This document shows positions 5,201 through 52,338 of a DNA stretch of 64,000 nucleotides, in pieces. Source of the stretch: Phallusia mammillata (Eukaryota). The stretch spans positions 27,714,001-27,778,000 of the forward strand of contig OZ281496.1 of the NCBI GenBank assembly GCA_965637545.1, in the 5' to 3' direction. A program made the translations under genes and the position numbers. Position 1 is the first letter of the stretch, and every line of letters starts with the position of its first letter. The notes beneath the pieces are model-generated. The model did no database searches. It worked only from the letters and a program-made list of their open reading frames with translations, and was not told the origin of the DNA.

Positions 5201-7778
5201 TAACGGTTAGTACACTCTCGCTACTCCTGGTTATTCTTAAACTCTTATTTGTGACAAGATTAGCTAAATTTTGACTTGCTGTTAGTTACAACAGTTTGTT
5301 TTTGAATTACAATCTATTTGTAACATTTTTTTGTTTCAAGTCGGCACTTTTAACACCCCCTAAGCTAGTCGTAATGTTTACGGTTACAAAACTAAAATAT
5401 AAAACAAACATTGTGACTACAACTGGGTGTTTTCGTGTTTTTGTGTGATTTGATGTTTTCTCGAATTGCTTAATTTGTTAATACATGACCGAACCGCACC
5501 ATACGTCAAGTGCCTGTTTAATTTTTTTAAGTTTGTTTCAATTTGCACATTCGTTGATTATATTCGGTATATACCATTGCATAAAATACAAGTTGCTTGT
5601 GGCTTTCCTTTGCCACGACATACTTTTGCCATCTAGTTGATTTTACCCGTGCAAGTCATGCCATTGCCCGTGTAGCCAGTGTTGCAAGCGCATGTGAAAC
5701 CCCCAGGTGTGTTGGTGCAAATTGCGTTCATATCACAAGAGTGAGATCCAGCCATGCATTCATCGATGTCTGAATAATTAGAAAACTTGTGGTTGATAGA
5801 TGACAATCGTAAGGCACTGTATTAAATATCGAAATACAGAGAGTTTATCTACAACATTGCCTTTAAAACATTATGAAGCATTGTGTTAACAAATTAAATC
5901 TGGATCGTGCGTTTATCTAAAACGTTTATTGACTGGACATAGATTGTTTGCTTACCAACACATGTCAATGGGTCCATGGTTCCGTTCACTTGGTAACCGG
6001 TGTCACAGGTGCAAGTGTAAGAACCGACGTTGTCAACACAAGTCCCGTTTGGACCACAATCATATCCGAAATCTGTGCACTCATTGAAATCTGTAAAAGT
6101 GGTTTTAAAGAATTGATTCGACAATTGTGTTTTGCACTTGTTGGTTTGTTGAGATGTGCTTGTAAGCGTTATAAACTAGCTATATATCTCAACGTTGGGT
6201 CTACTATTTAGGTTATTATTCATAACTTTTATACGAGTTACCTACCTGGGACGCTGAACGCATGTCTAGTTAAAAAGGTTTGCCAGAAATATCACAAAAT
6301 AATTGTGAAGTGATATTGTAAGAAAACGGCGTTTGTTTTTTGACCTGTGGTTAACAAACATCAACCGATGTAATATGTTCTTGTAAAATGGATACTTTAC
6401 CTGCACAAGTTAGTCCATCACCAGTAACATCTGCATTACAAGCGCAAGTAAAAGATGGGTCAGTGTTGGTGCAGGTAGCGTTTGCGTGACAGTTGTTCAA
6501 TGTGGCGCTCGCACATTCGTTAATGTCTACAATGACAAAGGCCAACAGATCATACTTTGATGATTTATGTAAACAAAAGTGGCAAACGCTCCACTTACCA
6601 ACGCAAACCAGAGCTGAATTAAGTTCGTAATCTGTATTGCAGGTACATGTGTAGGTTCCAGGCATGTTGGTGCATGAAGCAGTTTGCAGGCCGCATTCTG
6701 TACCGTTTCCGCACTCGTCAATATCTGAAAAATATCAATAAGCAATTACATCGCGGTTAATTTTTGTGATTTTTCGTGCTTAGTTTAAATATCCAATCAT
6801 ATTTTTTAGTAGAAAATACGCGTTTCAATTAACTTGTGAAATATTTCTCGTGCTTTTTCAAATTTATTGTAATAAGGTCTACTAGTTATTAAAACCGTTT
6901 AGGTATATTTTCTTCACACGACGTCGTTTTCTTCATAAAAAACGCATTTATCTTACCCGTGCATGTTGTTCCTGATGGTACCAGTGCAGTGGTAAACGTG
7001 GATGTGCTCATGTCGTCATAACCAGAATTACATACGCATTGCAACATTGAGGTGTCAAGATTAGTGCAAGTGGCGTCGCTGGCGCAAGGGTGGAGTGTCG
7101 TAGAGCAAACGTCGGTAACTGTAATAATTTCGTTTTGGATTAATATACATGCCTCAGTAGTAATTACTCCTATCACCTCCTTTCGCGGCAAAAGGTGACT
7201 GGACAATATTTTGTAATTTTTTTTGAATATAGGTTCAGAGTAAAAAATGTTTTGATTTCACTTAAGCAAAAAAAGATACTTACAGTTTTCGGCGTTACCA
7301 CCAGCCCGTATGGCGTCTAGCGCATTCGTGGCGATTGTAGAGTTTACGTAGGCGATAGTTTCAACAGTTTGGGTTATAACGAATCCTCCAAGACCATCCG
7401 GTGTACTTCGTGTTTGGTTGTACACAACGATAACTGTAAAAACTAATTATGGTGAAGTGAATTTAAGCCAACAAAAACACAGCACTTTATTTATTTGTTG
7501 TCTATTTTGGTCGTTTTGTTTAAAACGATAGTATTTTACAGATGCTGATTTGAATTGATTGGAATGTTCAGTTTTGAACAAACGCTCTCAAACTAGTAAT
7601 ATATAACAAAGCATTTTATAACTTAAACCTAAAGGTGTTATTTACATAAAACCGCACTCGCATATAGCAATTGAGAATACAAATGAAAAACATGCTTACC
7701 CGCATCGGTGTCAATCTGAGCTGAGACGCAGCTAATCAAGGCCGCACCGAATAAGGCGATAATAATCTTAGACTTCAT
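2251..7778 (-). CDS. Gene I: predicted GPI-anchored protein with signal peptide, Cys-free N-terminal domain, 10 EGF/cbEGF repeats and Thr-rich stalk (~560 aa)
   Basis: Exons 7700-7778 ([21 protein letters not shown]), 7284-7433, 6957-7118, 6599-6724, 6401-6526, 5956-6090, 5647-5769, 4634-4768, 4068-4190, 3648-3773, 3144-3278, 2749-2868, 2251-2393 (GNASTTTT...[28 protein letters not shown]). All junctions are GT-AG phase 1, total 1683 nt open. D-I-[DN]-E-C cbEGF motifs present. Confidence 0.85.
4521..4563 (-). pseudogene. Relic 3' end of an EGF exon ([14 protein letters not shown]) with dead donor
   Basis: Reads as an EGF C-terminus but the 5' part is missing and the donor position is GA (G|gaaaaa). 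The same relic is at 12057-12099. Confidence 0.7.
4986..5039 (-). other. Half-EGF exon remnant ([18 protein letters not shown]), 54 nt, frame-preserving
   Basis: Matches the 3' half of gene H exon 12482-12610 and keeps donor gtaagt. An acceptor-like ttttaag lies at the breakpoint. Confidence 0.6.
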
Positions 7779-7944
7779 TACGTTAAATCTGCGCTGTCTA
7801 CTGATTTTCAGTTTCTATTAGAAAACATTGCAATTAATTTTCGTATAAAGTGGCACTGTTTATAAAAATAAACAAAACTGTTGTTTATTCAACTGTAAAG
7901 ATGGAAACTCAAATTGGACAGCTAATCCACCTAAGTGTTTTTAC

Positions 7945-8366
7945 TAGTGATGCACGGAAATTTCGGTTGGCCGAAACATTTCGGTCTAATACGCTGGTTT
8001 TCGATGTTTCGGTTTCGGCCCGAACTTTTTTGAAAATTCGGCCGAAACCGAACTTTTTGATTGCATGGAATTAATGCGCAAACTAGCATTTTCACCAATA
8101 CAAAACGTCATAAATTAACTAATTGTTTTATCTATAAAATACGAGCGACTTTGTCTGTAAAATATTGCAAGTTTAGTAAAGCTACGAGATGGTGATTTTG
8201 ATTTGCATAATTCACTTCACTCGCATCAACCACACAAGGTTCAGTTGAAAACGTCCATAAGAAAGGGGATTTTAGCTTCGGCCTGATTCGGCCGAAATTA
8301 TTCGGCCCCGTGGCCGAATATTCGGTTTCGGCCCGAACCTATGTAGGCGGGTTCGGTGCATCACTA
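7945..8366. mobile_element. hAT-type MITE (422 bp) upstream of gene I
   Basis: TIRs tagtgatgcac / gtgcatcacta, 8-bp TSD gtttttac (7937-7944, 8367-8374), internal ccgaa/ttcgg repeats. Absent from the paralogous region near 450-490. Confidence 0.9.
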
Positions 8367-9788
8367 GTTTTTACACACTTGGTGTGTTATGTCACAGTTT
8401 CAAACAGGTTTGCCTGCGCAATGAAAAATCTTATAAGAAGGACACAAATAGCAACAGATATGGTTAATAGTGTGAATTACATGACTTGTTTCATATCTTA
8501 ACAAACGATTGAAGGCCGGTTTTCTGCAGTACTCTCTTTGCTAACTTATATCTCAATTGTTGTTTTTTTGCTGTTACTACATTTGCGACACAATTGCTAA
8601 GTTGAAATACAACAACACAAACAAACTGTTTTTGCTTTATAGTTTGCAAGCATTAGAATGACCTCAACCTGCGTTTTATCAATGTGTGTGGTTGTCGTAC
8701 CTGTTACGTGGCTATTTATTGATCTGATTACAGACAAAGTTTGTTATGAAACAGATTGTCAACCACACTACACCTGCAACTTTCTGTGGTCAATGTTGTT
8801 TTCACGAATCCAATCTTGTTTTCGTAAGCCATGTATGAACGAGTCTAGAGATAAGGCAAACCAATTGACGCGAACTTCGTTTTGTAGAGGTTTGGTCACG
8901 CGTGCATTTCATTAACTTGGCACAGAAAACAGGTAACATTGTTTTTCCTAATCGTCATGAACACAGAGCTGTGATAAATTAAATTTTTAGTCTATATCAC
9001 ACGAGCTATTTGAAAAAAAATTTCAACACATACGAGCACCAGTGTAATTGGCTCTGATGTAGTTCTTGAATGTTCACGGTTGTTGGACCATAAAGTGGGG
9101 TTGCTTATCGGAAAATATCGCTAGTAAGACTCCTCTTTGTACCGTGTTTTGTGTTGTGTTAGGCGAAAGCTACCCAACGAAAGTAATTTGATCTGGTCCT
9201 TTTGTTCCAACACAACACTTGAGAATGGGCACTTTGTATCACACACGCTATATCGGCAATCAGTGTTTATTGAAAACTCTTCATTAACCGTTTACATACC
9301 TACAGTTTTCTTCAAAAATAAGTTGTAGGTATTTTGCTGTACAAATGCATGTGAGGGTTAAACCAGATGTTGTACAATGTAAAAACATTAACGAATATGA
9401 AAAACGCGCAATACGCAATGTTACATCAAAAAAACTTTTTCTTTATTTGCAAGTGGCATGTAAAAATGATTACTTTCTTTTTCAAGCAAGTTTCTCTTTC
9501 AGTGGTACCAAATTCTTTAAAAAGGCTTTGAGCCAATAGATGATAAGCCACAGACAGTGTACACGATTTCGACCTGTTAGGTATAGCTTGTTACTCCCAT
9601 CAATGTGTCGTTGGGTGGCTACAGCCAATGCGACCTATCTGTCGTCACCAGCTGCACTGATGGGGCCTTATGGGTCGAAACAGTGTGCACTGTCTGCATC
9701 TTTGCCATTTTATAAACTTACACAATAGTCAGCATTTACACAGCAAGTGCACATATGCAAAGCATAATATACATAAATAGAATTGCAT

Positions 9789-12700
9789 TCAAAATCCAGG
9801 GATAAAAATACTGACAAATCCAAGCGCCATGAGAAGGAGAATTCCCCCAAACAGTCGCAGTCCGTTTGCGTCGTTGGTGGTGGTTGTTGTCGTTGTTGTA
9901 GTGGAAGTGGTGGTAGATGTAGTAGTTGTTGAGGCAGTACCTTGTAAATATTAAACTGACATTAGAATTTAGTTGCAGTATGTCAATGCGCAAATACTTT
10001 AATATGTGCGTCAGATAAAAGATAATTAGATGGGATTTCATTATCAACATATATCGAGAAAACATGCTGACATAAGTAGCTTGAAATATACTATGTTTCA
10101 ATTAGGAACATCATTGAGAAGAAATTCTAAACAACACAAGACATTTTTTAAATCAACAACATAAGGACTTATTTCGCTCTTTTATTTTAAGGGCATGCAA
10201 TGCATCTAACATTTGTCATTGATGTTGCTATACATCAACCTTGCTTAGAGACCCTATATGTGCCAAAACCAGGCATATTGTAACCATTTTTACTTGTACA
10301 AAAAGTTCCATTTCCAGTGAATCCAGTCATACAGGTGCAAGTGTAGCTTCCCGGAGTGTTCATACAATCGGCGTTTGTGTGGCAAGTTCCGTCTATATCA
10401 CACTCGTTGTTGTCTATAAAAAATGCAAAATAAGCGTTAAACTAACATACCATTGAACGGCATGTATATTTTTTAAAAGTAAAGACTTTGCGTTCTGGCG
10501 TTGGCAAAAATGATCTTCAAATCGCATTATTTCAACTATTACCGGTTATAAATGGCCCAAATATTCAATAATTCCATCACAACTACTACATGCAGAAGCA
10601 ACACAGAATCAGTAAGGCTACGATTGCAGTTTTTTTGTCGTCCTATTAAAAAATTTGCTCACCGACACAAGATAATGGGTTCATGGATAAGTCCACGCTG
10701 TAACCGCTGTCACAATTACAAACATAAGAACCAACGTTGTTCATACACGTTCCGTTGGTGCCACAATTGTAGCTGCTATCCATGCATTCATCGATATCTG
10801 TGAAAAACATTGTATCAGAAGTGCGTTCATTATTTATAGTCTGTTAGTTGATAATTTCTCTTTTCTAGACTGGGTGTATTGTGATTTCCTCTTGATTTAA
10901 TGTGCTGGCTGGTCTAAGTCTACGTTTTACGCTTGACCTACTAACAAATACGCTCCAGCACTTCCTTTATTTATGAGTACATTTTCGTCTTTTTGAGAAA
11001 CGCAGCTGTAGCTTTTGCTGGAGATACGCCTTCTAACGCTATTTCATTTCTGTTTATTCCAATATTTTAAAGTGGATTGTAGTTATTACTCAATGAGAGG
11101 ACGTAAAAGTCCATAAAAAGTAAAAAAAAGTTCAAAGGAAGGCAATTTGATACCTGAACATGTAAAACCATCTCCGGCATATCCCGTATTACACGCGCAA
11201 GTAAAACTTCCACCAGTGTTTGTGCAAGTAGCGTCACTGTGGCAGTTGTTTGTAGAAGCATCGCTGCATTCGTTTACATCTGAAACATGTAGGTAAAAAC
11301 GTTGCGAGATTTTATCTTCCATTTCAAAATATTAGCGACAAGAAATAATGCACATTTTTGTTCAGACGTGCAGAACCTCGTTCTCTGCCGAGCTTTGTAT
11401 AACTAGTTGATTTAAAACAAGCCAAGCTTGTTGTTTTTTGTTTGTTTATGTGTTTAACATTACCATTGGAAACGAATATTTCTCTCGGTTGACTGGACGA
11501 AACTCCGTTTATTTATTTGAATATTCAGTGTAACTAAGATATTGTTTATTAGTTCTCAATGTACACCTACCTTGGCATATGTTTGCCGAATCCATTACGT
11601 AGCCTCTATCACACGTACACGTGTAAGATCCTGGTTGGTTCGTGCATTGGACGTTTCCCCCTGTACAGCCAATTGTCATACATTCGTCGATATCTGTGAA
11701 TATGTAACTTCGAAGTTCTGATGTATGCTAAAGACTTGTGATACGGCAAATTTGGCCCATTGTGCGACTAAGCTTGTCGGTCATTTATAAATATGTTTAC
11801 ATCTGAATCTGAAATGAAAAAATCTGAAATGAGAAACCGCTTGCGGTCTGTTGAGTAACAAAAATGCAGTCTTTTGTGTAATACAATGCAGTTAAACGGT
11901 GACAAGTTTTTGAAGCCCCTAAGAGTAAAATCTAACATGACAAAATACACTATCAATGCGACTGTCATGAGAGAAGCAAAATTGATATGTATCCTTCTGA
12001 AACAAAACAAAATTATATTTTTGACATTATTGCAAGTAAACCATTAGTAGTTTTTCCTGTACAGGTTACTCCGTCTCCATTGAAGCCTGAATTACAAGTT
12101 AGGGATAAAATAAAGAGTTTACGACTTTAATTTGCTGCAGAATAAATACAGTCTCCTTACCAATACATGTTAACGGGTCCATGGTTCCGTTCATTTCGTA
12201 ACCGGTGTCACAGCTGCAAGTGTAAGAACCGATGTTGTCGACGCAAATCCCGTTTGTCCCGCAATCATATCCGAAATTCACACATTCATCGATATCTGTT
12301 GTATAATTTGAATAGATTTGAAACACATGTTTTTAATCAGTAGCCTATTGGAAAAAAATATTTGTAGAATTGTGGCTGAAGTCTGCTTGGTTTGATATTT
12401 GATTAGATGTAGAACCCCCTGCAACTACCCTTTTTGCCCCTTTAATGGATCAAATAACTCGTCTCTTTTTAGGATTCTTACTTGTGCAAATCAGTGCGGA
12501 GTTTAGAACGTAGCCAGAGTTGCAAGTACACGTGTAAGTTCCAGGATTGTTGTCACATGAAGCGGTTTGTGCACCGCAAATTGTGGAGTTTCCAGCGCAT
12601 TCGTCAATATCTGAGATGTATGTGATGTTAGATAGCATTTCCATGCAACATTAACGTTAAAGCCAATCAGAAAAAAAGTAGTTAAATGTCTGCCCGCTTA

Positions 12701-15161
12701 AAGATAGGACATCGCATGCTTTTTAGTAGATCTTGTGTTTGGGTAATGTGAGTGGAAAACACCAAATAAACAGTGATATATTGATTGTACGAAATCTTGT
12801 GTAATTAAATTGTGACAAAATTGTCTGACAACTTGAAATTACCTCTACGGAAGACATTTTTTCAAAAACATTTGTATTTTACACTCGGCAAAAATGTACA
12901 AAAAAAAATTGCGCAAATCAAACTGAGCGAATCATTTTACCTGCGCAGCTTAAACCGTCTCCTGTGAATCCAGTGTTACATGTACAGATGACAGCAGCTG
13001 CACCATTAGGTGTACAGGCAGCGTTGCTATCGCAGTTGTTTATAGTATCGTTCAAACACGCAGTGGTTTCTGAAATGTATAACGGTATTGTTTACATATT
13101 ACTACGTTAATATTTTTTTAGTGTTTGTTGTTATCATTTTTTTTATCATTTTACATAGATACTAGAGCAATGGCCGGGGCCGGTTCGTGAGGAATTTATT
13201 ACCGGGTTCTATACTTTTTCAGGTTTGAAGCTTTCATTGCTTATAAACATAATTACTAAATAAGCTTAAGGTTCTCATTGGATCAACTTTGTAATAGTTA
13301 CTTTAAATACCGGTCCGATAAAATTTCGGTTTTGAAACGGTCCGCAGTGCAAAAAAGGTTGCCATCTCCTGTGCTAAGCGTTTGTAGTGCTTAAATGTGT
13401 CTATGCAGGCTACTGGATAATGCCTTAAAATTGATAGAAAATTGTTTTTCACTTACCTACGCAAACCTGTTCACTATTGATTGAGTATCCATCATTGCAA
13501 GTACATGTGTAAGACCCGATGTTGTTTGTACATGAGGCAGTCTGTGGTCCGCACACGGTGGAGTTTACCATGCATTCATCAATGTCTAAAGAGTATTGCT
13601 CATTCTAATGATTTGGTGCAGACCAAGGCACTTTTTAAGTCACTTTGTGCTGTCTTCAAAGGCTTTTAATTTTCATTATGAGATGTGAGTTCTTTAGACC
13701 ATGAAAATTGTTTGTCAGGTCGGTGTAGCATTCAGTAACATTTGCTTCAGTAACACCCCTATTTTGTTAGGTTGTTTAGTAGGAAATCGTACTTAAACAC
13801 GCCGTTAAAAAGCATGATCGTTTTGAAATACACCTTAACACTTACATACTTACTGCTAGAGTATGCATTTAAACACTTTTTAAAATGTGCTCAACAATTG
13901 GATCACGCAGTTTGCGTCTTAATGCCTGTAAATCTTTTTTATTGGCACTTGTGCAGTCTGGGATGAACATGATAAACGTTACTGACCTGCGCAACTTGTT
14001 CCAGCTGGAACGATCCCGTTTGGATCCACCGTGACTGTGCTATTGTCGGTATATCCACTGTTACATGTGCACTGAACCAATGACAATCCTCGATCGGTGC
14101 ATGTCGCGTTGACGTGGCAAGGATGGAGTGTTGTAGAACAAACGTCACTAACTTTAAAATGTACATTAAGTTTTGTAATATCGCCAAAACATAATGAAAA
14201 GTTATTGTTTAAATCTTTTACATCTGGACCGTTCGTTGTGCTATACCTAAGTTTTATGTGACAAAAGTCATTCACTGATTAATATATAGTCCCTATTTTA
14301 ATTCAAATAACCATCCATACTATTTTGTAGATTCAATCGTTTAGAGAAGGGTCACCAAACTACGGCCCGCTGGCCGGATTTATTAGCTTATTAAACATCA
14401 ACACACTTATCCGGCCCGCAGTGAAAAAAGTTTGGTAACGCCTGGTTTAGAACACTGCATGTGGATCTGTGTAAAAGTTTAGTGATAAAATAACGGCTAT
14501 TTGACGTAAAAATCGACATGCTTTATCACTGATGATGCCATGAACATTTGCCGAAACGTTTGAACAAAAATGTTGCTTTTTACGTCTATTTGTGCCGTTG
14601 TTTTCATTATTTAATTGTTTGGTCTGTTACAGTAGCTTATAGTGCAAAGGTAGTTCAAATACACATATTAAAGAGCAAGGCCAGGCGTGTGACATTCGTT
14701 TAGTTTAACGCACTGCCTTCTTGATTTGACTCGGAGACTATGATGTTTCTTGAATCTTGTGCGATAGCCAAGTTGATGTAGGCCAGGGTTTCAGTGCTGG
14801 CCGTAATGGAGCCACCATCGCCACTTGGAACAGTACGGTTGTATACGACAATAACTGTGATGAAAAAGAAGATATGTTATGGTGGCAGTAGCATTTTTAT
14901 AATGTTAAGAGAATAAACACATATTTATAGAATTTATTCTTACATTTGTTATCTTTACGTTTTTTTTTGAAAAAAAACCTCGGCTCTTGTAAGGCCACCT
15001 TATCCGATAAACCAGCATTTCAAAGGATTTGACCGAGTAACGGATTTTAAACGCGCAGCACATTTACATTACACCAAACTTAACTTACCGGCGTCCGGAT
15101 TGACCTGGGCCCATCCACTGGTAATCATTGCGAACAACAACACTACATTCATAAGCAACAT
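9789..15161 (-). CDS. Gene H: predicted GPI-anchored protein with signal peptide, Cys-free N-terminal domain, 9 EGF/cbEGF repeats and Thr-rich stalk (~518 aa)
   Basis: Exons 15089-15161 ([24 protein letters not shown]), 14714-14854, 13987-14151, 13457-13585, 12941-13069, 12482-12610, 12161-12295, 11571-11693, 11154-11279, 10663-10797, 10294-10413, 9789-9940 (STASTTTT...[28 protein letters not shown]). All phase 1, 1557 nt open. Confidence 0.85.
12057..12099 (-). pseudogene. Relic 3' end of an EGF exon with dead donor (copy of 4521-4563)
   Basis: Same 43-nt [14 protein letters not shown] remnant followed by gaaaaa instead of gt. Confidence 0.7.
13165..13372. mobile_element. Degenerate hAT-like MITE, shared with the gene G intron (~19035-19228)
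   Basis: Right end cggtccgcagtgcaaaaaaggttgccatctcctg resembles the right end of the 36438-36609 element. Left TIR and TSD are decayed. Confidence 0.4.
14347..14444. mobile_element. ~100-bp hAT-type MITE, copy in gene H intron 2
   Basis: Imperfect TIRs (a)agggtcaccaaac / gtttggtaacgcctg, TSD gtttagag/gtttagaa. Same site as 20185-20284. Confidence 0.75.
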
Positions 15162-15794
15162 GTTTTTCTCTTTTGTGTAGCTTTTGAAACCACCGTGACC
15201 AAACTTTACGATTAGTTTTCAATATAGACGTACCTATGCGAAACTGCCTAAATTTTAAAGCAAAATCCGCCGTAGTTACAAAACAAAACAACCGGCTTTA
15301 TTGTTACAATGCCTTTTTAGAGTTGTTTCTAAATAAAAACGTTCAGCTGAACTTTGCCTTACACTGTACGGTTTTGAGGTTTTATTAAAACGAAAGCTCG
15401 AAAAACAAAAAATTCTACTGCCACAAGTACTCTTTTCTCACTGTTATTTCGTCCTTGTTAACCAGCACCTTACAATCTCGGCCATAAATTTCAAACAAGC
15501 ACATTTAACAACGTTGTACAACCTATTCGTGCTAATACTATGATCATAAGACATTGGTACCCACATCCAAATGGGGATAGGCGTTGTTCATTTTACACTA
15601 TTACGTCACATTGATGCTCGGTCGCGCGTAACCCATGATGGCTGCGCCCTAAAATGATTCAAAACATTGATTCGTACAAGTGTCGTAATACGGAAAACCT
15701 ATGTCGAGCACAAAACTAGAGGCTTTGATTTTCGGAAATTGTGGGGTTGGGAAGGGGTTTACCGCTTAGAATCAACAAAGCAGTTTTCACTGGT

Positions 15795-15928
15795 TATGTA
15801 CGGGAGTTATATAGGTAGAAAATGCTTTTTGTTTGGGAAACAAAACACGAAACTGGTCTTTTATGTACGGGAGTTATATAGGTAGAAAATGCTTTTTGTT
15901 TGGGAAACAAAACACGAAACTGGTCTTT
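15795..15928. repeat. 67-bp direct tandem duplication (also 21660-21793; single copy near 25460)
   Basis: tatgtacgggagttatataggtagaaaatg...gaaactggtcttt occurs twice in tandem. Confidence 0.9.
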
Positions 15929-16638: not shown

Positions 16639-16654
16639 CAGTGGTTCTCAAACT
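16639..16654. mobile_element. Solo hAT-like terminal repeat (also 22507-22522)
   Basis: cagtggttctcaaact matches the other hAT TIRs in the window. No partner TIR or TSD found. Confidence 0.35.
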
Positions 16655-34444: not shown

Positions 34445-37400
34445 TTACATGAGCACGTCCATTGCAAAAGCAGTAATGAACGCAATAACTGCCATGAGGA
34501 GTAATCCTATGTCTCCGTGTAAAACCGTAGCAAAGCTGCATTCAGTTAGGTTCTGAGGAGGAGGAATGCCTTCAAAAGCGAAAGGAAATCAATTTATCAT
34601 ACATTTATAACAATATGTTTTAAAATAATTGCCTGGCGACGAATTTAGCTTCATAAACTCGTCGCATAAATTTATGAAATAAACTATTATGAAGCTATAC
34701 AATGAAATAGTTGTCCCTATTAATCAAACTACTGGAAGTTGCAATGCTTGTTAACTGGTAACTTTGAGGCACGTTTGTTACGTACCCATGCAGTAGGTTC
34801 CATTTCCATAGTAAGGATAGTTGCAACAACACGAGAAATCCCCTATGTGATTGGTGCAGGTTCCATTTTCATGACAATTGTCTTGTCCGTTGGTACATTC
34901 ATCGACATCTACAGAAAGCATCTTGTTTGTAAATGCTCGTTTTTATACCATTTTGCCAAGTTTACTATTCATTTTATAATGTATGATGTTTAGGTAATTC
35001 TTAAATCGGTACCTGGTTGACAGAAATAATGTGTCTTTGCGCAATAATACTAGACACAACTTGGCGAATGGGTTGTCGTTGTAAAACAATACTGTTAGTT
35101 TGTCCTATTTTCGATAGTTTGCTTCAAAGGTGGTTTGCACTTGCTTTAAAGTATAACAAGGTCACTAACCGTCGCAATAAGTTCCGTTTCCTGAGAATCC
35201 ACCATGACATGAGCATGTGTAACTTCCATCTGTGTTGATGCAGTCAGCATGTGGACTGCAAATTCGAGGCTGGTTGCATTCATTGATGTCTAAAACGGAG
35301 AAACGTTTGAACTCTAATCCATTTAGGCCAGGGGTGGGCAACATACGGCCCGCGGGCCGGATCCGGCCCGCGACGGGATTTTGAGCGGCCCGCAGACAGT
35401 TTCTGGTCTTGCATGATAATGTGGCCCGCAGCCACATTCTGCCGCAATCCCCTACTACTTGCTTACTCCGTCAAATTATAGTTGTAACGGACAGTAACGC
35501 TCCCCACTAGCAAAAAACTTTCCCGCCGTTGTAACCATCGCACCATACATCCATTGTTACGACATAACTGCAAACTTTGTGTTTGGCCTGATTTCTCGGT
35601 TTTCTTTCTTTCCACACGTGTAGCCTAGTTAGTGTTTCTAAGTCTGTGGTGTATGCATTAAATTTGCTGTGGTGAATAATTTTATGTTATATCAGTTAGA
35701 TTGTTTGGACTGTATTGTAATTGCGACGTTCTTGATTGTATTTAGTTTAGGTGGTCAAAAACCCGTTTTAAATCACTGGATAAATACGCGATTCAGGAAT
35801 CCGGCCCGCCAAGTACTTCATTTTCCCATATCAGGCCCGCCGACTGGAGAAGTTGCCCGCCCCTGATTTAGGCTAAATTGGTCGAAAGTATAAGTGATGC
35901 AAGATTTTTTTCTGTGGTGGTAAAGGTGAACCATGTATGTGTAGTTTCGTTTTTAAAACATTCCAAAACAGCCAGCTGATTAAAATCTCTCTATTTTGCA
36001 TTTGTTTTGTTATTTTGCTAATATTAGGCAGCACGCGTTGAAGTTTTCATGCAATTAAATTTTGTTTTGTCCACCTTTGTATACCTGTACAGTTGTTGGT
36101 AGTGTAACCGGCATGACAGAAACATTCAAAGCTGCCGATTGTATTCACACAATCGGAATGGGTTGGACAGTTATCTGCTGCTGTGTTGCACTCGTTAATA
36201 TCTGAAATGAAGTACAATGTATTTGGACATCTGTTGACCATTTAATGGAAATGCCTCGTCATTATTTTAACTACTTAAAAAGTTAAACTATAGTTATTTG
36301 GTCATACCAAACGATTTGCAAAGAACGGGACACTTGTGTTGCACATTTTCATTTATATGACGAGTGCCAAAAAGTGTGACTATATCTAATTAAAATGCTT
36401 TTTTTATTTCTTTTCATATAAAACTAATGCATTAGACCAGTGGTGGGCAACCGCCGGTCCGCGGGTTAAATGCTTTAAAACATTTTGCCCTTGTATCCCG
36501 TGGGTGTTAGGCGTTTTCAGTGCTAAATATTTGCATTTTTAAGGGCCGGTCCACGATAAAATTTCAGTTTCAAAAACGGTCCGCAGTACAACAAGGTTGC
36601 CGACCCCTACATTATACCATCCGCTTCAAAAACATCGGAAGCTAAAGATAATAATCGAAGTATCTAAATCGGTCAAATAACTTTAAATCGTTTTACACTT
36701 GGACTACCCGTGCAGTTGAATCCGTCTCCTTCATATCCAGCATTACAGGAGCAGGTATAGCCGCCTGGCGTGTTGAAGCATGTAGCCTCTTCGTGGCAAT
36801 TTGCAGCGTTGTTTAAACACTCGTCGAAATCTGCGCAGAAAGTCAATGTCCTCAAATAAATAATATCGACAAAGCGACACCTGTTAAATCCGTCCGGATT
36901 TCTTACATTTTGATTGTATTTAGGGGCTCATAGACGTTGACAACCTGTCGTTTACGGTTGAAAAAATAAAATAAAATTGAACACAACTTGCATTAAAATG
37001 CAGGGCAATTAAAAAAACATCGCTATGGCATCAAAATGCCTGGATTAGAAGCCACACAAAAGGTTGGGTAACAAACCTAGGGTAAACAAGTCGCTCTTCG
37101 CAATCAAATAAATACGATAATGTCCCATTGGGTGTTAATGTAAATTTTAATGACATACCTTGACAGTAAGTTCCATTGCCATCATATCCGCTATCACAAA
37201 CACACTCGTACATTGTGCTGGTATTGACACAACTGGCGTACTGGTCACAACCGAAGTAATAGCAGGGATCGTCCTCTGTAATGTAAACTTATGATGCCAC
37301 ATGCGAACGTAATCAAGTTAAACTTTTGTTTTCACAAAAACCATTTAGGCAAAAATACCACTGTTCAAAACGCGGTAACGCAACGTAAATTCTGTATTTT

Positions 37401-41573: not shown

Positions 41574-44500
41574 CTATAAGGCAAATATAGGCGCCACAAT
41601 AATTAAACAAAGGAAAATGATTCTATAACTAGCGTAAACAATTGAGGTCGATCCAGGTTTTCCTGTGGTTGTTGTTGCTGTACCCGAAGGATTGCCACTT
41701 TGAGCTGCAGAGTTGCCAGTTCCACTCGAACCTGCTGATCCACTACTGCCACTTGCGGCGCTAGAACCACTGCTGCCACTTGATCCTATTGTGCCGTTTA
41801 GGTTGCCCGGCGCGGACTTACATAACGGCGCTATGGCTGTGAAAAGTTAAATTATACTATTAATTGTGTCCAGGTTGTTTTGTTCAAAACATGTAAGTTA
41901 TATGAATGTTCATCTGCCTCAAGTATTCAAATAACAGTACATCCTTTTTTAACCCGTAGTTTTAATCATGCGTGTTAATAGAAGTCCACACAACGGTTAT
42001 GTTTATGTTGTTAAAACTACCCTTGATATTATCTGCAGTTTGCAAGTTTTATGCGTTATAGGTTTGTTCACAACATTAAAATATCGTGTCAGTAACACTA
42101 CAATCTGGAAGCAAACAAGCGACGTTGAATTTAATTTGAACCGAAAAACATCAGTTTGCAAAGTGTTGTTTTCAAGACGTCTAGGAGGTGCATGTGTAAA
42201 ATGGTTGGTCTTTAATAATGCATTGGTAAGTGTGATATTGTTAGACTTTGTCATCAAACAAACGACTTAAAACCGATACACATCCATTTTGCAGCGCGTT
42301 TGCTGAAAGACTTACTTGAATATTAGGCTGTACAAACACATTGATAAGGTTTGTGCTTACCCGTACACCACGTCCCGTTGCCTGCGTAACCCGGGTATAT
42401 GCATTGACACGAATAGCTTCCTATGTGGTTAGTGCATATGGCGTCCTTGTGGCATTTGTTCTGTCCGTTCGTACATTCGTTCACATCTAAATCAATCATT
42501 TTCACAGATTAAGTTTTACGAAAATTCGATTTTAGATGAGGCTTAGAAAGGATGGGCTTATTCCTCTGTACCTTTACAAAGTGGTCCTTGATAGGCAAAG
42601 CCCTTTTCGCAGTCGCATCTGAAACTGCCTTGTGTGTTGACACAAACTGCTCGTCTTGTGCACGTGCCCGCCAGTGTTGAACATTCGTTAATGTCTGAAC
42701 AAAGAAAAAATATAAGGTTTGACGTAGGTACACAAATACACTTGATATTTATAAGTTACCAGCTGTTATTGTTTCTTATTCTTGTCACACTACATTTTTC
42801 AGTCCTCCAACAAACCCAATATTACTAAATAACTAGGCAAAATGCATTTAGGGTTCACAAATATTGGTACATGTGCAAAGCTGTGTATAAACTTTTACAC
42901 GCATTAAGTATTCGTGCAAAAATCGTTTCGAGATTTACTTGCGATCACGAAGGTCGATCGCTTGTTCTTATAAAATGTAGCCAAGTCAAGATACACAACC
43001 AAGAAAATTGTGATTGATTTTAAGTTCCAGGATGTTATTACTTGGTAATATTTTACCGTTCCTTTGCTACAAAAACAAAATATAGTAATGTTGTTGGTAT
43101 ACAGAGTTTTTACAACACAGACAATGGTGATTGATATTAACATCCAGGATGTTGTTAGCTTGTAACCTTTAGGACCGTTTCTTTGCTACAAGAAACATAA
43201 CATAGTAGCCTACCGTAGATGGTACAGAATTGTAAGTCGGGCCGGGCTTTTTGTGCCGGGGTTGGTCATGTGTTTGAATACAGGTTTGTATCGGTCCTGG
43301 CACTCAGCCTCATTTGTGTCGCAATTTTCATCTTTTAGGCCTAACTTTTAGGCCGGGTTTAGACAGGGTTTAAGTATCTAAGTACCTGTACACGTTCTTC
43401 CATCACCGCTGTATCCCGTATTGCAGTTGCATATGTAAGTGCCAATGCTGTTGGCGCAGGTGGCATGCGCAGAACATTTGTCAGTTTTCTTAACGCATTC
43501 GTTGATGTCTGTAGGTCAACATGTTAAATAGTGAAACAGAATTAAAGTTGTTTTGGGGCAGAATTATATCACACGGCCTTGTTGCGCAGATATCTGTCTT
43601 AAAATACAAAATAAGTGCGATAAAAACGTCAAGTTTCAATCATAACTACATGATTAAAGTACGTGGCTTAATGAAAAAGTAATGTTCCCATTTGGCAGAA
43701 TCACTTTAACTTAAATTGACCACCTCGTGTTTTTGAGGGTCCGAAATGCAGCAAAATTCATAAAAAATATCTTACCTGTACAGTGAGTTCCGTTTCCACT
43801 AAAACCAACATTACAAGAACATTTGTAACTTCCAATCGTATTTGAACACGTGGCGTGTGCACTGCACTTGTGTGTTCCCGCTCTACATTCGTTTATGTCT
43901 AAGGCAGAAAAAGCAGAATAATATACATAACTATGTACTGAGTACCAACTTCGTTAAGGCGCCGTCGTATTCAGCACTACTTCGTCAAACATACCCAGTG
44001 TTTCCTTTTAATTTTAGTTTTTTTTAGCAATCAAACAGTCAAACGTAGCAATCAAACTTTGAAGTTTTCGTTAAATACAAAAGTTCAATTAGGAAATATC
44101 CATGTGGGAATGCGATCTATGTATCAGGTGACGCCAATTGCCTGTTTGTGCCAATTTGGAGTTTTTTTTTCACCGTTTTGATTACCTGAACAGTTGCTCC
44201 CAGTTCCTTTGAATCCTGTGTTGCAAACGCACTGGTAATTCCCGGTTAAGTTTAGGCACGACGAGTTTGCGTGGCAGTTCTTGTAGTAACAAGGGTCGTA
44301 CTCTAAAAAAAATATCACCACTTTTCTGAAACACCTGCGTTGGTAAACTTGTATCGACTTAAACGCTTATGCTCAAGTGTGTTTGGCTCTGAAGTCTGTT
44401 AATCAACAGTATCCGTAGTTGGTCTAATGACAACAGTTACTTATTTATTCTACATCATAAACTTACTGATACACTTCTTTGGAGGAACCAGCATATACCC

Positions 44501-46658
44501 CTTCTTGCATGTGCAGTTGTATGTGCCAGGATAATTGTTGCATTTTAGTGTGTGAATTCCACAGATTGTGGTGTTTCCAATACACTCGTCGATGTCTGTG
44601 AAAGTTGCAGTTGTTTTACACATTGGTAGTTAGAAACGCGTCAAGTAAAATCAAAACATGACTTTTGCATAGCCCGTAAACATATAAAGCCAGTTCAATC
44701 GTAGGCGTTGAGGTACGCTGTAGTAATTTGTCACTGGCGAGAATTTTACAACTATGATCCTTGACGCTTTTCACAATGCATTTCTTACCTACGCATGCAG
44801 TTTTAGTCTTATGTATCATCACAGGTTCATTGATGCCCTTGATTAACTGGTAGGTTTGATTGTATCCTGGACTACACGAGCACTTCACTTCATACCCGCT
44901 GATATTGGAACATTTTGCGCCACCACCGCAGGGTGAACTTGCTGTGCTGCAGGGCTTAGGGACTGTAATGACAGAAAAATTAGATTAAATCATCAAAGCT
45001 AAGCTCGTTACGATGTTGACTAGGAATAGTATGGGGTCGTGACCGCAACTACATCCACGCTTGGGAGGTGCGTTAATGATATTTTCGTTGGTGTTGGTAG
45101 TACATTGGATTTAAAAGATTGCTCAAAGTTGGTTTGGGTATTGTCATACTTTTTGCTGGTGAATATGTCTTGCCAAAAAAGGTTTAATTTGTCACTTGTT
45201 CGTCAAAACTTTTTAGAATGCAGTTGGCCACTTACTTTGTACGTCAATTTTGGCCCAAATATTCATTACATTAAGTTGCTTCTTTTCTCAGCAAACGAAA
45301 TATTGTGCCAATCTTTGAGATGCTATGATCATCGGTGATATACCACTCTGAACCCCAAAAAACCCCAAGACTGCCCAATGCTGCATGTTTTAGCATAAAA
45401 TCTTTTGTTTTCTGCAAACGTTTATACCGCTTTAGTAGATTTAATTATTACTGAGAAATGCGCTTGTCAGTTTTCACGAAAAAAGATTTAAATATTTTGC
45501 TAATATTATGGAGTATTGAGGTACCTACGTTTGAGTTTTTGTCGGTGGATGCCTTTTGCCAAATAATTTGTAATTGCTGCATAAATACCAGGAAAGTGAA
45601 AGTAACGTGTTGGTTTTTAGGGCGACATTTCGTTTACTGGGTCTGGATTTCTTAAAACGTGTGGCACACACTGTGTCACATATGTCCATGATAATTTTGG
45701 AAATATCACAAAGTGTTTGAAGCAGTCCAGGAAGTCCTGTTTAATAATTTCCTCTTATTGTTGTAGAGTTTAAAAGAAACTCCTCGCCGTTTAATCATGC
45801 TTTTCTAACTCGGTTACAAAGCGTTTACCCCACCAGCCGTGTACTCATATTACATTTTTCGTGCTGGAAACCAGGCAACGATTAATTACGTTTTGTGCCG
45901 ACACCTTCGACCTACTGTACGTTTTTATGTTACATTACATACGACTGGTTTTTTAGTTTATGTATATTGCGGTAACTTGTTCTGGTAACAGGTTCAGCTC
46001 ACTGAAAAGTTACTGTAAAAAGAAATTATGACTAAATTTGTCCCCCAAAATATCGCATTCTTTGATATTCAAAGTACGACAAGAACGATAAAGTCACGAA
46101 ACACGTGTAACAACCTCTGGAATCTTATATGCCGCTGCATTATCCGTCAAAAACAATAAATTGCAAACATCACTTACTTGGAATTGAGGCAACAAGCTTG
46201 TTCTTAATTGCTGCGGCATCCGTAAAGTTATGGAAGGGGTAGTACTGAATATGGTTTGGATTTGTGATCAGTGTTTGCAATGCAATGTCTAAATACACGG
46301 CATATTGATTACTCTAGTAACACAGTGGTAAACTTAATCCCCAAACTTTGGATCGATTCTAAGTGCTGTTAGCATTACTGCTTAGGTAAAAATGTTAGTT
46401 TGAATGCTACAACAGCAGTTGTTAAGACTTTAAATTGTACATACACTTTAAAATCATTTCCTGACACGAAACGGTGCAACTAATTCTTAAATGATGAAGC
46501 TTATAAGGTACATATGTATCACAAACTGCTGTTGCAGTCTATAACTTTTCAACACCTTCTATCTAAGACTTACACACGTCTTGGATAATTGCTTGGGTAG
46601 CAGAAATCCTTGCTTTGGATAAAAAAGCTACCGCAAACAGAACAGTGACCACCTTCAT
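41574..46658 (-). CDS. Gene B: predicted GPI-anchored 7-EGF protein with Ser/Gly-rich stalk (~457 aa)
   Basis: Exons 46574-46658 ([28 protein letters not shown]), 46178-46288, 44789-44962, 44467-44595, 44186-44302, 43776-43898, 43386-43508, 42572-42694, 42361-42486, 41574-41836 ([26 protein letters not shown]...[25 protein letters not shown]). 1374 nt open. Confidence 0.87.
43003..43205. repeat. Degenerate ~117-bp tandem duplication in a gene B intron
   Basis: ccaggatgtt...ctttgctaca occurs near 43027 and again near 43144, each preceded by a gtgattgat motif. Confidence 0.55.
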
Positions 46659-48240
46659 TCCAACAATTTGGTCAGCAGATTCACCGTTAACCCTCGGCAC
46701 CAACAACCGTAATTAAAGTAATCTAAGCTGTTTCTACTTAAAATGAACATAAAATTCGTTAGTTGGATGAAATGGTTAGCACTATTTTTCTGTTTTTGTG
46801 TAAAATAAAGCTTCAGTCAATTTTACGCTAACCATGCTATTTTGAACAAGCATCGTCTTCCTGTACGCATGACGCCGAACAACTTCACTTTCTCCGCCCA
46901 TCCTGAAACAACCATGTTACATCATCGCGATTCAAAAGTGCTCGCATTTAAGCACCCAAGCTAACTAGCCCTTGCGTTTTTGCTGCCCTTTACTTAGCAT
47001 GGACCTAAAGTAATGCTCTAGTATAGGAAACTAAATCCTGAAATAAACAGAAAAGTGCCAGCTCTATTGACGTGTGTTTAAAATAATATATAATATCATA
47101 GTTAACACAACATGTCAAAAGTACTCTTTCAAACAAATTTGCATGGCAGAAACGCTAAAACAAATAGTCTTGTTTGTTTTGGCAAAATTCCATGCGCTAA
47201 TATAATCGTGCTGCTTTGACGCTAGCTTGAAGCGATTACTCGTCAGTATCGCAGGAGTGCTTATAGGAAGTCCACAACTTTTCGGCTGGATGTTTATACT
47301 ACAGCTAAACAAATACCTGCATATCAGAATTTACTATTGATTCCCGTACGTTCAACGTGTTTTTATTGAAAGACTTCCGTCATTTTTGCGATTTTGCTAG
47401 TTGTTTGCAAAAGGATGTTGTGTAGTTTGCTTATAGTTTTGTGGCAGTGAAATACGTTTTTGGCCCATTTGTGTGGTTAAATGATAAAAATAAGTTGAAT
47501 CTTCATAAAACTGGGGGTGCTTTTGAGCCCCTCAAACCCTCTTTAAGAGCAACGCCTTTTCTATTGTTTATGTTTGGAAATCACATAAACGGTCCCTTGG
47601 GTTGTAAATGTCCATCACCTATTATTGTAAGGATATCACCTTTGGGACTTCCATCAACGTCCGGCTGTCGAAAGTGATTGCAGATGCCTAGTTTATACCC
47701 CTTGGGAAAATCAATTGCTGGCCCCTGTGTGGACTCAAGCTTTGATTTCGTATTTCGTATTGTGAATGCGTTCCAAAACTAACAACGCAATGGCCTCATA
47801 TCCTGATCCGTAATTTTTCTATGAAAGTTTACTACGCTCAGGCTTACGCGTATCCCTATTATTTTAAATCCAGTTTTTTTTTCCGTAGCACCAACGTTGT
47901 TTTGTATTCTACTGTTAGGCATTGAATTTGAGTTTAGTGCATATTGCGAGTTCACTTATGATTGTGCATCCTATTAGCTGTTTTCTATTTAAGGAGAAAT
48001 TCATGGTCTTCTCATAACAACATACTACGGTCAACAGTTCAAAAAATGAATGTTCTGCAACATTCAGTTAACAACACCGCCTTGTGCAGGTTTTAAAGGT
48101 TGGTTATTTTAATATTGGAAGCCAACAAACTGAATCATATACACAACAAAACGTATTTACATTTGTACACAACAATTACACTACAAAAAATGACGTTTCG
48201 AAGTCTATGAAATGAAATCTTAGGAATCCAATCTTCTTCT

Positions 48241-51200
48241 TTAATTTTTCGCGCACGTTTCTGAAACAAATACAATTTTCTCGATTAGAAATTGCGTTTT
48301 TTGTACTTCCAGTGCTTCAAAGATACGTAAAACTATTGCTGGTAAGAACAGATATGTTTTTTGTTGTTGAATAAATAAATAAAAAAGTCGGGTAATTTTT
48401 GCAAGCCTTACTGTATGCTGTCGTTCATTGCTTTGTCTATATTTTGAAACCATATCTTTTAAGCTACAAATCATGGGATAGATTTCTTACGTTTGCACCA
48501 AGTTCCATTTCCAACGAAGCCAGGATATTTACACATACAGGAGTAGCTTCCAATGTGGTTAGTGCACGTAGCCTCTTTATGACACTTGCCCTGTCCGTTC
48601 AGACACTCGTCCACATCTGCACAAATTGTTTGTTTGCGATTAAAACAAAACGGCATTTTATGCCTTACGACATTAATTTGGTTACACAAAATCACGCCTT
48701 TAATAGGCCTGGCGTACTATGAATTACACAAAATGGTTCTAAATAAGCAAGTTGATACAATGCAATGGCTGCTTGAGTTCATTTACCCCATGTTGACATG
48801 TGAAACCGTAGAGACGTTGAATATTAATTGCTTGCTGAGAATATTAGCTAATTGTTTGACCGTGGCAAGAGTTATTTCGCGAAACATTTATTGTTTGCTA
48901 CCGCAATTTGGGGACTACAATCACTATAATTGTACTTTGTTCTAAAGTGCAATGGTGCTGAATAGATAATGCAAGGATATTTAACAGGTATCTTTCCTTG
49001 TTTTTCATTCATTTTTGACCCGAAAGTTTTAAAATATTCATACCTTTGCAAAGTTTTCCTTGGTATGCGAATCCAGGTTGGCACTTGCACTCATAACTTC
49101 CCGGTGTGTTAACGCAATTGGCGTACAAAGTGCAGTTCCCGTTGCCAGGCAGCAGGCATTCGTTGATATCTGTGAATTACAGCAATACATCTTGTTTTTT
49201 CTGGCATTTATCTTCGCGTAATTGATGCATTTAATTGTATTCGCACTTATATACTTGTGTTGCTCTGAAAGGATTTGGAGGTCCTATAACTAAAAGTTGT
49301 ACTTTGTGCATACAAATTGTGCGAGTTAACTTACGTGTAAGTGAATAATTATGCACAAGATAATTTAGCCCCCTTCAATACACTTTAAAATATTCCAGAG
49401 CAAAAATACTCTATTAAAACAAATGATATGTCGTCACAAATCTTCCAAAAGTACATCAGCTTTTCTTGTTGTGGTTGTTGTTTTTATCAACATAATGCGA
49501 TTGCTGCGTCAGGGGAGTTCATGCTTGTAACGAGTTACTGCCGTTTCCTATGTTTTACTGACGTAAACTTCCTTGACCCGTGCCGATTTTTCGCTTTTGC
49601 AAACAACGCTGTAATGACAAGCGGAATTTCTCAGCATGAACTATTACATAATGGACGTATTCTTTACCTGACTTCGGGATTTTGTACCCTGTGTTTATTC
49701 TCAGTAACATCCTGTTTACGGAAATTTTTCGTTTATACAATTCTGCACATGTGTCACGAACAAAAGCGACAAGTATTAGTTGTAAACAACGTAATATTAA
49801 GACTACGTCAGTCGCATTTAGCAGCGTTGTGGGGTCTTTAGTCAGTCAACACGACGTTTTTCTTGAACTAACTTTGATTGGGCGGTTTTGTGCAACAGTT
49901 TTCGTCACATAAGATTCAACTACCAGTAGCATAAATAATACTCATGCTTTTGATTTTTACTTAAGACCAAGTTTTCGTAACAAAACAACACTTTTCTGGA
50001 GTAATAAGCTGTGTTCAGTTCTCATGTTGACAATATATGTGTGCTAAAGATCTAATCTCTTACCTGTGCAGACCTGTCCGTTTCCAGTGTATCCTGGTAA
50101 GCATGTGCAAGTGTGACCCCCAAACGTATTCGCACAAACTGCGTTCTTGGAGCAATTGTTGGTTTTTAGTGCACATTCGTCCACGTCTAGAAAAATATTC
50201 GAAATACTTTCTGTTTAAATGGTAGCCCTTTGAGCGAATAAGTTGAGAAAACAATTTGATTCGATATTATCAAGCAATGTGTAATAATTGTAAAATAACC
50301 ACCGGCAAAGAACTATTGTACACTATCTATGATTCGTTTGATATTCACTACTGTAATTTGTAGTTGATCGATTGAGCAAAACTTACAATTTGACGTATGG
50401 CATTCTACAGTTCAGTAGTTTTTGATGCAGTTAGTTCTGCCCCCAGATAAATGGAGGGAAAAGTAAATCTTACCGGAACAGTTTCGTCCGTCTCCGAAGT
50501 ATCCTGGTTTACATTTGCATGTGTAGCTTCCCACCGTATTGGCACAAGTGGCGTTTGAGTGACAAGTCGCAGTTCCCTTCGTACATTCGTTTATGTCTGT
50601 GAACGCAATGCGAAACGTAAAGCTTTCCGCAAGCAATATTGCCAGATTACTTTTAAAATCGTTGTCGAAAAACCGAAAAATCAGGGGTTTGAACTGGTTA
50701 AGTTTAGCTCAAGAATCATTTGCTACAGACGATTACACAAATCTCTTGGTAAAGCTATTTCTGTGTTAAAATATATTGTAAATGCAAACTGCATTGCTAA
50801 CTTATGCTCTTAAGACTAAGTTTGTCAAGTGTGTGCTGTTGCATTCTATACTGATTTTGAACGACATTTACCTGTGCAATAGGACCCGTTGCCACTAAAA
50901 CCTGTGTTGCAAACGCATTGAAAGTTTCCACTAGCATTCGAACAAGACGAGTTGGCGTGGCAGTTCATGTAGTAGCATGGATCGTATTCTGTTGAAATAT
51001 TTAGTACCTTAATCAGTGGCCATCATTGTGTTTAATTGCTTACCCATTCGAAAGACAATTATTCTGCAAAATGTATACTGAAGGCAGGCTTCGAGCATGC
51101 ACTATGTAATTTTAATCAAAGCCATACAATATTCATGCTATCTCCGTTTAAGTTTGAAAGTGAAACGTGTTGTCGTTGGGAAGGTTTGTGGCCGTAATGT

Positions 51201-52338
51201 GGTTTACTTACTGATACATTTCTTAGGAGGAACCAGCATATATCCATTTTTGCACGTGCAGTTGTATGTGCCAGGATAGTTATTGCATTTCAACGTATGA
51301 ATTCCACAGATTGTGCTGTTTCCAATACATTCGTCCACATCTAATAAAATAAATTTAGGTAAAATTGGAAAAAATGGAACCATTAACATTTATTTGCGAG
51401 GTTCGAAACGAAAGCATTGTAGTGTAAAACTTAATGGTATTTGGAAACCAAGATAAGATTATCACTATACAATCTCTGCCAACTTTAAAGGCCTTTGGTG
51501 ATGTTGCTTATATATTGGTGGAATAATATAACTAACAGCTTGTTCTCCAAGTTAACGTCCACTGTAAGCTACTGGTTAGACAAAGTCTTATACCTTGACA
51601 TGCCGTTTTCGTGCCAACTACCATCACTGGTGTTGTGATGCCTTTGATCAGTTGAAAGGTTTGATTGTATCCTGGACTGCACGTGCATTTCACCTCGTAC
51701 CCGCTGATATTTGTGCATTTTGCCCCGACGCCACAAGGTGAATTGGTAGCACTGCATGGCTGTGTTACTGTAAAACAATACAGCAGCTTTGTGTTTGATA
51801 AACATCCGTATCAACACTGCCTGTTTATTCCTAAAATACTGCGTTTACCACACCCACACTATATAATCTACTAGTGTATTTGTGTCGTAAAACTGTTAAG
51901 ACAACATACCAGTTGTTACAAAGTAAATCATGTGGCTAACTTTTACACATTGTCTGGTACCTGGAATGGTAGCCACGAATGCTTTTCTGACGTTAGCTGC
52001 TCCTGTTTGTGTGTAGAAGGGGTAATACTGTATGTGACTTGGATTAGTAATCAAGGTCTCCAGTGATATATCTACAAAGGACAATCTAATTAACGTATCG
52101 TTCTCTTGGTTATTTACACTCTTTACCGAAAGTTATGTGATTAATGTTAATTTAGCTATGCGCAAATGTAGACATTACAACATTTATCGAAACCAGTCAG
52201 ATACTTATAGTAATAACTATTGCAGCATTTCAGGATTTTGCCAAGATACTTACAAGAATCTTGATAAATGCTTGAGACCGCTTCATTTTCTCCCACCATG
52301 CAAACTGCTATAGTTAATACCAGTACAAAACTATTCAT
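48241..52338 (-). CDS. Gene A: 7-EGF paralog of B and C, probably secreted (no GPI tail found; ~377 aa)
   Basis: Exons 52254-52338 (MNSFVLVLTIAVCMVGENEAVSSIYQDS), 51961-52071, 51594-51767, 51212-51340, 50872-50988, 50474-50596, 50064-50186, 49044-49169, 48491-48616. Sizes of the first seven exons match gene B. The best terminal exon is 48241-48260 (tttgtttcag|QTCAKN*) and is less certain. Confidence 0.8.

Follow-up and report, generated by a model that had tools for sequence, protein, structure and literature searches.

The closest described systems to the genes analyzed here are the vitelline-coat proteins HrVC120/HrVC70 of Halocynthia roretzi and CiVC57 of Ciona. These proteins consist mainly of 12-24 epidermal growth factor (EGF)-like repeats, possess variable regions, and function in self/non-self recognition and in the binding of gametes (PMC9265791). 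At the C-terminus they have a ZP domain; CiVC57 contains, in addition, a transmembrane domain and an N-terminal vWF domain (PMC9265791). We analyzed 64,000 nucleotides of the Phallusia mammillata genome (assembly GCA_965637545.1, contig OZ281496.1, positions 27,714,001 to 27,778,000). This whole stretch is called the window, and all coordinates below refer to it. The window has a composition of 37% GC without N runs, and contains seven long genes (A, B, C, D, G, H and I) on the minus strand. Like HrVC120/HrVC70 and CiVC57, they are predicted to encode ascidian secreted or surface proteins built mainly of EGF-like repeats. However, each of the seven proteins begins with a Cys-free segment of 37-50 residues, which we call the head. 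None of the vitelline-coat proteins is described with such a head, and the descriptions set them apart from the present genes.

The genes also resemble the calcium-binding EGF arrays of the fibrillin/Notch type, in which likewise one domain is encoded by one phase-1 exon. Exon 4 and the later exons of the present genes are of the EGF_CA kind, each with a D-x-D/N-E-C start, six Cys and phase 1-1. Their matches to Pfam EGF_CA reached 34-40 bits against a cutoff of 27 (exon 4: 34.1 bits in gene A and 40.5 bits in gene D). Known EGF arrays of the fibrillin/Notch type start with Cys-rich modules or with EGF itself. We know of no Cys-free beta-hairpin/helix cap at the N-terminus of such an array.

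An earlier note, made from the sequence alone, had described an unrecognised, Cys-free N-terminal segment on every long protein and had quoted its peptide for genes A, B, C, D, H and I. All six peptides were found, and the span assigned to them (7284-52071) corresponds to the outermost exon borders. The D, I and H peptides matched the minus strand exactly. Those of A, B and C matched except for the first residue, the codon of which is split across the splice junction. Gene G, which was absent from the quoted peptides, encodes a seventh head nearly identical to that of gene H, and the description holds in all seven long genes. In every case, the head corresponds to exon 2, located between the signal-peptide exon and the exon of an atypical EGF. 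Exon 2 possesses an AG acceptor, a GT donor, phase 1-1 and no Cys codon in all seven genes. Its length is 111, 141 or 150 nt, each divisible by three. The heads fall into class 1 (A, B and C) and class 2 (D, G, H and I), as follows.

52071-51961, minus strand: gene A exon 2, class 1 head of 37 codons, counting those split at the junctions (peptide match; RNA joints at both ends)
46288-46178, minus strand: gene B exon 2, class 1 head (peptide match, borders and phase)
39935-39825, minus strand: gene C exon 2, class 1 head (peptide match, borders and phase)
32202-32053, minus strand: gene D exon 2, class 2 head, 50 codons (peptide match, borders and phase; hairpin and helix predicted by AlphaFold2)
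20696-20556, minus strand: gene G exon 2, class 2 head, 47 codons (near-identity to H, borders and phase)
14854-14714, minus strand: gene H exon 2, class 2 head (peptide match, borders and phase)
7433-7284, minus strand: gene I exon 2, class 2 head (peptide match, borders and phase)

The head exon of these EGF-repeat genes is real and transcribed. In the spliced contigs of a public RNA run (X1), the gene A joints 52254|52071 and 51961|51767 were detected on the minus strand with GT..AG ends. Seven further gene A introns with GT..AG ends were detected in the same manner. Since the spliced contigs carry both joints, exon 2 of gene A is present in the mature mRNA exactly as predicted. The joined gene A exons translate to an open frame composed of the signal peptide, the head, the atypical EGF and seven calcium-binding EGF (cbEGF)-type domains. 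For gene B, an X1 contig covers exon 1 and the 5' untranslated region (46601-46737), and its length arithmetic is consistent with the inclusion of exon 2. Direct RNA support for exon 2 is limited to gene A.

The predicted architecture of the proteins is a signal peptide, the head, an atypical EGF with a long C5-C6 loop, six to nine calcium-binding EGFs, a short Thr/Ser/Gly stalk and a tail of the glycosylphosphatidylinositol (GPI) type. After cleavage of the signal peptide, the head would be placed at the mature N-terminus of tandem EGF-repeat surface glycoproteins. A class 2 head would most likely form an N-glycosylated beta-hairpin, across which an amphipathic helix, capped by an invariant Asn, would pack. 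For class 1, the support concerns the helix only. The head and the equally fast-evolving first EGF (EGF1) would make up the variable tip that a stiff EGF rod presents farthest from the membrane, and this tip would determine the choice of partner or serve as a cap. We consider it probable, with considerable doubt, that the head is such an orphan element at the mature N-terminus, with a hairpin and a helix in class 2. The head may pack on EGF1, and among its possible functions, recognition of a partner at the distal tip would be the most likely one.

The start of the mature chain can be estimated from the signal-peptide exons. Exon 1, apart from gene D's own exon 1, ends with one extra base before GTAAGT. 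This base is T in class 1, which yields a junction Tyr, and G in class 2, which yields Val. Signal-peptide cleavage sites of the A-x-A type are located 6-12 residues before the head. From this upstream exon structure, the mature chain would begin 6-12 residues before the first predicted strand. The exons are as follows.

52254-52338, minus strand: gene A exon 1, signal peptide and about 12 residues of the mature N-terminus (donor joint 52254 in RNA contigs)
46658-46574, minus strand: gene B exon 1, equivalent of gene I exon 1 (sequence)
40396-40312, minus strand: gene C exon 1, equivalent of gene I exon 1 (sequence)
32284-32234, minus strand: gene D's own exon 1, truncated (31 nt from exon 2; donor out of phase)
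21026-20954, minus strand: gene G exon 1, equivalent of gene I exon 1 (sequence)
15161-15089, minus strand: gene H exon 1, equivalent of gene I exon 1 (sequence)
7700-7778, minus strand: gene I exon 1, signal peptide ending in CVSA, followed by QIDTDA (sequence)

When gene D's own exon 1 is read through toward exon 2 (32284-32203), an in-frame stop is encountered, and this short exon looks like a deletion relative to gene I. A relic of an eighth family member was found between genes C and D.

33044-32966, minus strand: eighth copy, intact signal-peptide exon with the donor G|GTGAGC
32866-32759, minus strand: eighth copy, decayed head-like exon starting with IVVYNVT (in-frame stop at 32761-32759; no phase-1 donor)

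The head-like exon begins 99 nt after the signal-peptide exon. Because of the truncation and the out-of-phase donor of its own exon 1, gene D may be expressed via the intact upstream exon 1 at 33044-32966. Another signal-peptide exon, at 305-227 on the minus strand, belongs to a further class 2 gene, the head exon of which must lie just past the window start.

Propeptides typically follow the signal peptide directly, as the head does, and ascidian EGF-repeat coat proteins are known to undergo protease processing (PMC9265791). The head could accordingly be a propeptide removed in maturation, as HrVC120 is processed to HrVC70; the earlier note had itself considered this outcome. However, neither a furin site (RX[KR]R) nor a conserved dibasic site was found in or after any of the seven heads. 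The sole dibasic pair, RK in gene A, is not common to B and C. Furthermore, the known cleavage of HrVC120 is C-terminal, at Arg668, and not N-terminal (PMC9265791). We regard removal of the head as very improbable.

For the four class 2 heads, AlphaFold2 gave a mean predicted local distance difference test (pLDDT) score of 82, and four of the five models scored at least 74.6. The model comprises strands at residues 2-12 and 17-28 and a helix at residues 31-48, that is, a beta-hairpin followed by a helix. Across class 2, 16 of the 49 positions are invariant. The invariant positions are IVVYN.T, P.G.GG (turn), T.ET, N30 and A34, with variable residues between them. The model agrees with the location of the invariant turn P.G.GG, with Asn30 directly before the helix, and with the conserved NxT sequon at residue 5 in strand 1, the middle residue of which varies. 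A disordered prediction, which the earlier note had named as counter-evidence, did not occur in the AlphaFold2 models.

No known fold was matched when the class 2 model was compared with the PDB by Foldseek (best E 1.8). In a wide search with VIA-align, the best Z was 4.3, with a root-mean-square deviation (rmsd) of 2.6 Å over 44 residues, for 3qwm_A and other PH domains; a Z below 8 may reflect only a common arrangement. These best structural matches are of a generic type, a beta-hairpin with a C-terminal helix, as formed by strands 6-7 and the C-helix of the PH domain. Each has a Z below 5, is a fragment of a larger fold, and provides no evidence of kinship. A shape search of the Atlas returned small phage and bacterial hypothetical proteins, among them an 82-residue phage model (TM 0.75, rmsd 1.3 Å over 44 residues). 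This TM value means little because only about 44 residues are compared.

Sequence relatives of the head were also sought. With E allowed up to 10, five of the seven heads had no match in Pfam. The candidates on the other heads were rejected, as all scored below the cutoff: DUF5026 (16.8 bits on I and 12.5 bits on D, cutoff 25, at profile positions 20-45 of 82) and DUF7456 (15.1 bits on I, cutoff 27). The sequence profile search of the PDB gave a best E of 0.56 and no credible relative, and no usable match was obtained in the feature search of the ESM Atlas. Two metagenome scans with both class profiles were blank. Word-index protein searches with the open reading frames around D exon 2, A exon 2 and A exon 3 were also blank; since only candidates of about 44-161 residues were eligible, they are silent on full-length relatives. 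No paper on such a family was found in the literature.

A profile search with the seven heads against 1.84 billion representative proteins yielded 20 matches (best 45.9 bits, E down to 4.8e-7). All 20 are microbial proteins built from multiple copies of a unit of about 45 residues (SGYTSGG...IDKFPFATDANATDVGDL), every copy of which aligns to head positions of about 12-45, with the motif F-x-F-A-x-x-x-x-A-T common to both. Single stretches scored only 1-22 bits with a best library-wide i-Evalue of 16, and the total was summed over 3-7 near-identical repeats. The proteins possess neither an EGF context nor a single N-terminal copy. Because their significance is a sum over weak, near-identical repeats, they were rejected, and the likeness was treated as a chance motif resemblance. 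The top matches (library proteins P0001-P0008) represent an unannotated microbial family with repeats of about 45 residues (SGYTSGG...IDKFPFATDANATDVGDL...GQSS) and no Pfam family above the cutoff.

A class 2 self-match would score 86-89 bits, and none appeared in this profile search. The proteins of the species itself thus appear to be absent from the library, and the lack of relatives is weak evidence for that reason. The head remained unrecognised, as the earlier note had stated: no confident match to a known domain was obtained with Pfam, the PDB sequence profiles, the profile search, Foldseek or VIA-align. Overall, the interpretation given in the earlier note is partly supported, and we take the head to be a lineage-restricted orphan cap with a putative binding role.

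Evolutionary rates were estimated from the D-I pair, the only pair in which the synonymous divergence (dS) is unsaturated. In the head (exon 2), the proportions of non-synonymous (pN) and synonymous (pS) differences were 0.256 and 0.188 (pN/pS 1.36), which is not distinguishable from neutrality (p=0.51). In the next four exons (EGF), pN was 0.101 and pS 0.249 (pN/pS 0.41), showing purifying selection (p=1e-4). A Fisher test on the non-synonymous and synonymous counts separated the head from the rest (p=0.031). Between the G and H heads, two non-synonymous and no synonymous changes were found, adjoining the NxT sequon. In the heads of the D-H and I-H pairs, dN/dS was 0.18-0.35, with dS saturated between D/I and H.

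Several points weigh against a folded, fast-diversifying head. The earlier claim that the head diverges strongly applies to the D-I pair and does not extend to A-B. The A and B heads share 61% identity (pN 0.23), the EGF exons 47-93%, and cbEGF exons 6-8 (pN 0.27-0.32) diverge as much as the head or more. Even for D-I, relaxed constraint fits the head as well as diversifying selection because the rate is neutral, and the damage at the 5' end of gene D may affect the rates of this pair. The X1 transcripts had no listed differences from gene A exon 2. For the class 1 heads, AlphaFold2 gave a pLDDT of 65 with helices at residues 3-8 and 21-33 and no hairpin, on a fragment without the approximately 12 mature residues encoded by exon 1. 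The beta-beta-alpha fold proposed earlier for both subfamilies is thus supported in class 2, and only the C-terminal helix is common to the class 1 model, which is of low confidence. Moreover, the models of both classes were made from the isolated exon with alignments of only 3-4 paralogs.

The neutral rate of the D-I head suits another explanation, which we judge to be unlikely. The head may be a weakly constrained spacer or cap, left from the founding exon of the family, which drifts almost neutrally without specific binding. The nucleotide divergence of the D-I head (24%) is near that of intron 2 (18%), the class 1 model is of low confidence, and no relatives outside this genome were found by the word, profile and metagenome searches. 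However, the invariance of 16 class 2 positions persists despite the saturated dS between D/I and H, and none of the sequon, the turn glycines and the N-cap has been lost. The dN/dS values of the D-H and I-H heads also argue against free drift. In addition, the exon has been kept in all seven genes with its phase and splice sites intact.

Whether class 1 and class 2 represent one domain was analyzed by alignment. MAFFT aligned the two classes with 17-22% identity and a gap of 10 residues in the turn. The profile-profile comparison that the earlier note had called for did not join them: the similarity was not significant in hhalign (P=0.042), and in the Smith-Waterman alignment against 2000 shuffles, z was below 1.1. 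The cross-class identity was 23-34% in exon 2, 26-38% in exon 3 and 52-54% in exon 4. The two head classes would nevertheless share a common descent, for which the argument is positional: they agree in exon rank and phase, both are followed by an exon 3 of one kind, and their exons 4 are clearly paralogous.

Exon 3, which adjoins the head, encodes the atypical EGF.

51594-51767, minus strand: gene A exon 3, atypical EGF with a long C5-C6 loop, adjoining the head (RNA joint; Pfam EGF_3)
44962-44789, minus strand: gene B exon 3, equivalent of gene A exon 3
39447-39274, minus strand: gene C exon 3, equivalent of gene A exon 3
31857-31696, minus strand: gene D exon 3, equivalent of gene A exon 3
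19993-19829, minus strand: gene G exon 3, equivalent of gene A exon 3
14151-13987, minus strand: gene H exon 3, equivalent of gene A exon 3
7118-6957, minus strand: gene I exon 3, equivalent of gene A exon 3

Exon 3 of genes A, D and H matched Pfam EGF_3 with 29.9-32.1 bits (cutoff 28.5). The match spans only residues 4-34 of the 53-57 residues, and the long C5-C6 loop is not covered. About 20 residues between C5 and C6 are therefore outside the profile, and this loop is beta-prone. Thus, the head may not be an independent domain: its hairpin would complete a composite fold with the loop, and the functional unit would be exon 2 plus exon 3. In agreement with this, each head class always occurs with its own type of exon 3 (174 nt in class 1 and 162-165 nt in class 2), and exons 2 and 3 are about equally divergent across the classes, whereas the conservation of exon 4 is far higher. 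Moreover, a single helix on a sheet of two strands leaves one face of the sheet open. However, the class 2 head alone is already compact in the model, and it superposes on the 82-residue Atlas model over 44 residues. We consider the composite fold possible but rather doubtful, and continue to prefer the architecture set out above.

The position of the head relative to the membrane was considered from the putative terminal exons, which were found for four genes.

41837-41574, minus strand: gene B terminal exon, stalk and hydrophobic tail (sequence; phase-compatible acceptor)
34570-34445, minus strand: gene C terminal exon, stalk and hydrophobic tail (sequence; phase-compatible acceptor)
9789-9941, minus strand: gene H terminal exon, Thr-rich stalk and hydrophobic C-terminal tail, GPI-like (sequence; phase-compatible acceptor)
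2394-2251, minus strand: gene I terminal exon, stalk and hydrophobic tail (sequence; phase-compatible acceptor)

These exons encode a Thr- or Ser/Gly-rich stalk and a hydrophobic tail running to the stop codon. A GPI signal consists of small omega-site residues, then a short spacer and finally a hydrophobic tail of 15-20 residues to the stop; such a pattern was seen by eye in all four, suggesting that B, C, H and I may be GPI-anchored. Since they end in a stalk and a GPI-like tail, the membrane-distal location of the head claimed by the earlier note is plausible. In each of the four genes, a single intron of 200-550 nt separates the last EGF exon from the terminal exon. Thus, there is no room for a ZP domain in these genes. 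Conserved 3' coding blocks of A, B and C were sought by tblastn and none were found, and the 3' ends of genes A and D were not found.

Other features of the window were as follows. Between genes D and G, there are two copies of a different, short gene type (28114-26400 and 24339-22700, minus strand), with a signal peptide (MKCSTFIALFFLLVNETW...) and small six-Cys exons (DCNRDCGLGSCV...), without a head exon. A GC-rich stretch of about 140 nt is located at 35470-35330 on the minus strand, in the intron before the gene C exon at 35289. Its open frame is unlike the AT-rich surroundings, and it may be a repeat that was inserted there. A 33-nt piece of gene A intron 8 (48694-48726) also occurs within many contigs from each of the four RNA-type runs, where the flanks on both sides are unrelated, and it appears to be a short dispersed, transcribed repeat. 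An Rfam search over the whole window gave nothing.

Ascidians possess several allorecognition and self-sterility systems made from polymorphic extracellular repeat proteins, and the recognition determinants have been identified for only a minority of these systems. A stronger proposal for the present family would be that the head and EGF1 constitute an undescribed, fast-diversifying recognition domain at the tip of tunicate-specific, GPI-anchored EGF rods. Its role would lie in the recognition of gametes or of self and non-self, parallel to that of HrVC70, and the two classes would be ancient specificity groups. We hold this proposal to be quite unlikely. If the head is only a cap, it would be an ordinary lineage-specific N-terminal extension; its interest would then lie chiefly in annotation, since neither gene predictors nor domain databases would give it a label. 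EGF rods that form a tandem family, still duplicating, and carry an orphan tip that changes fast would be a candidate recognition determinant, and this tip would be a small, experimentally tractable module of 50 residues encoded by a single exon.

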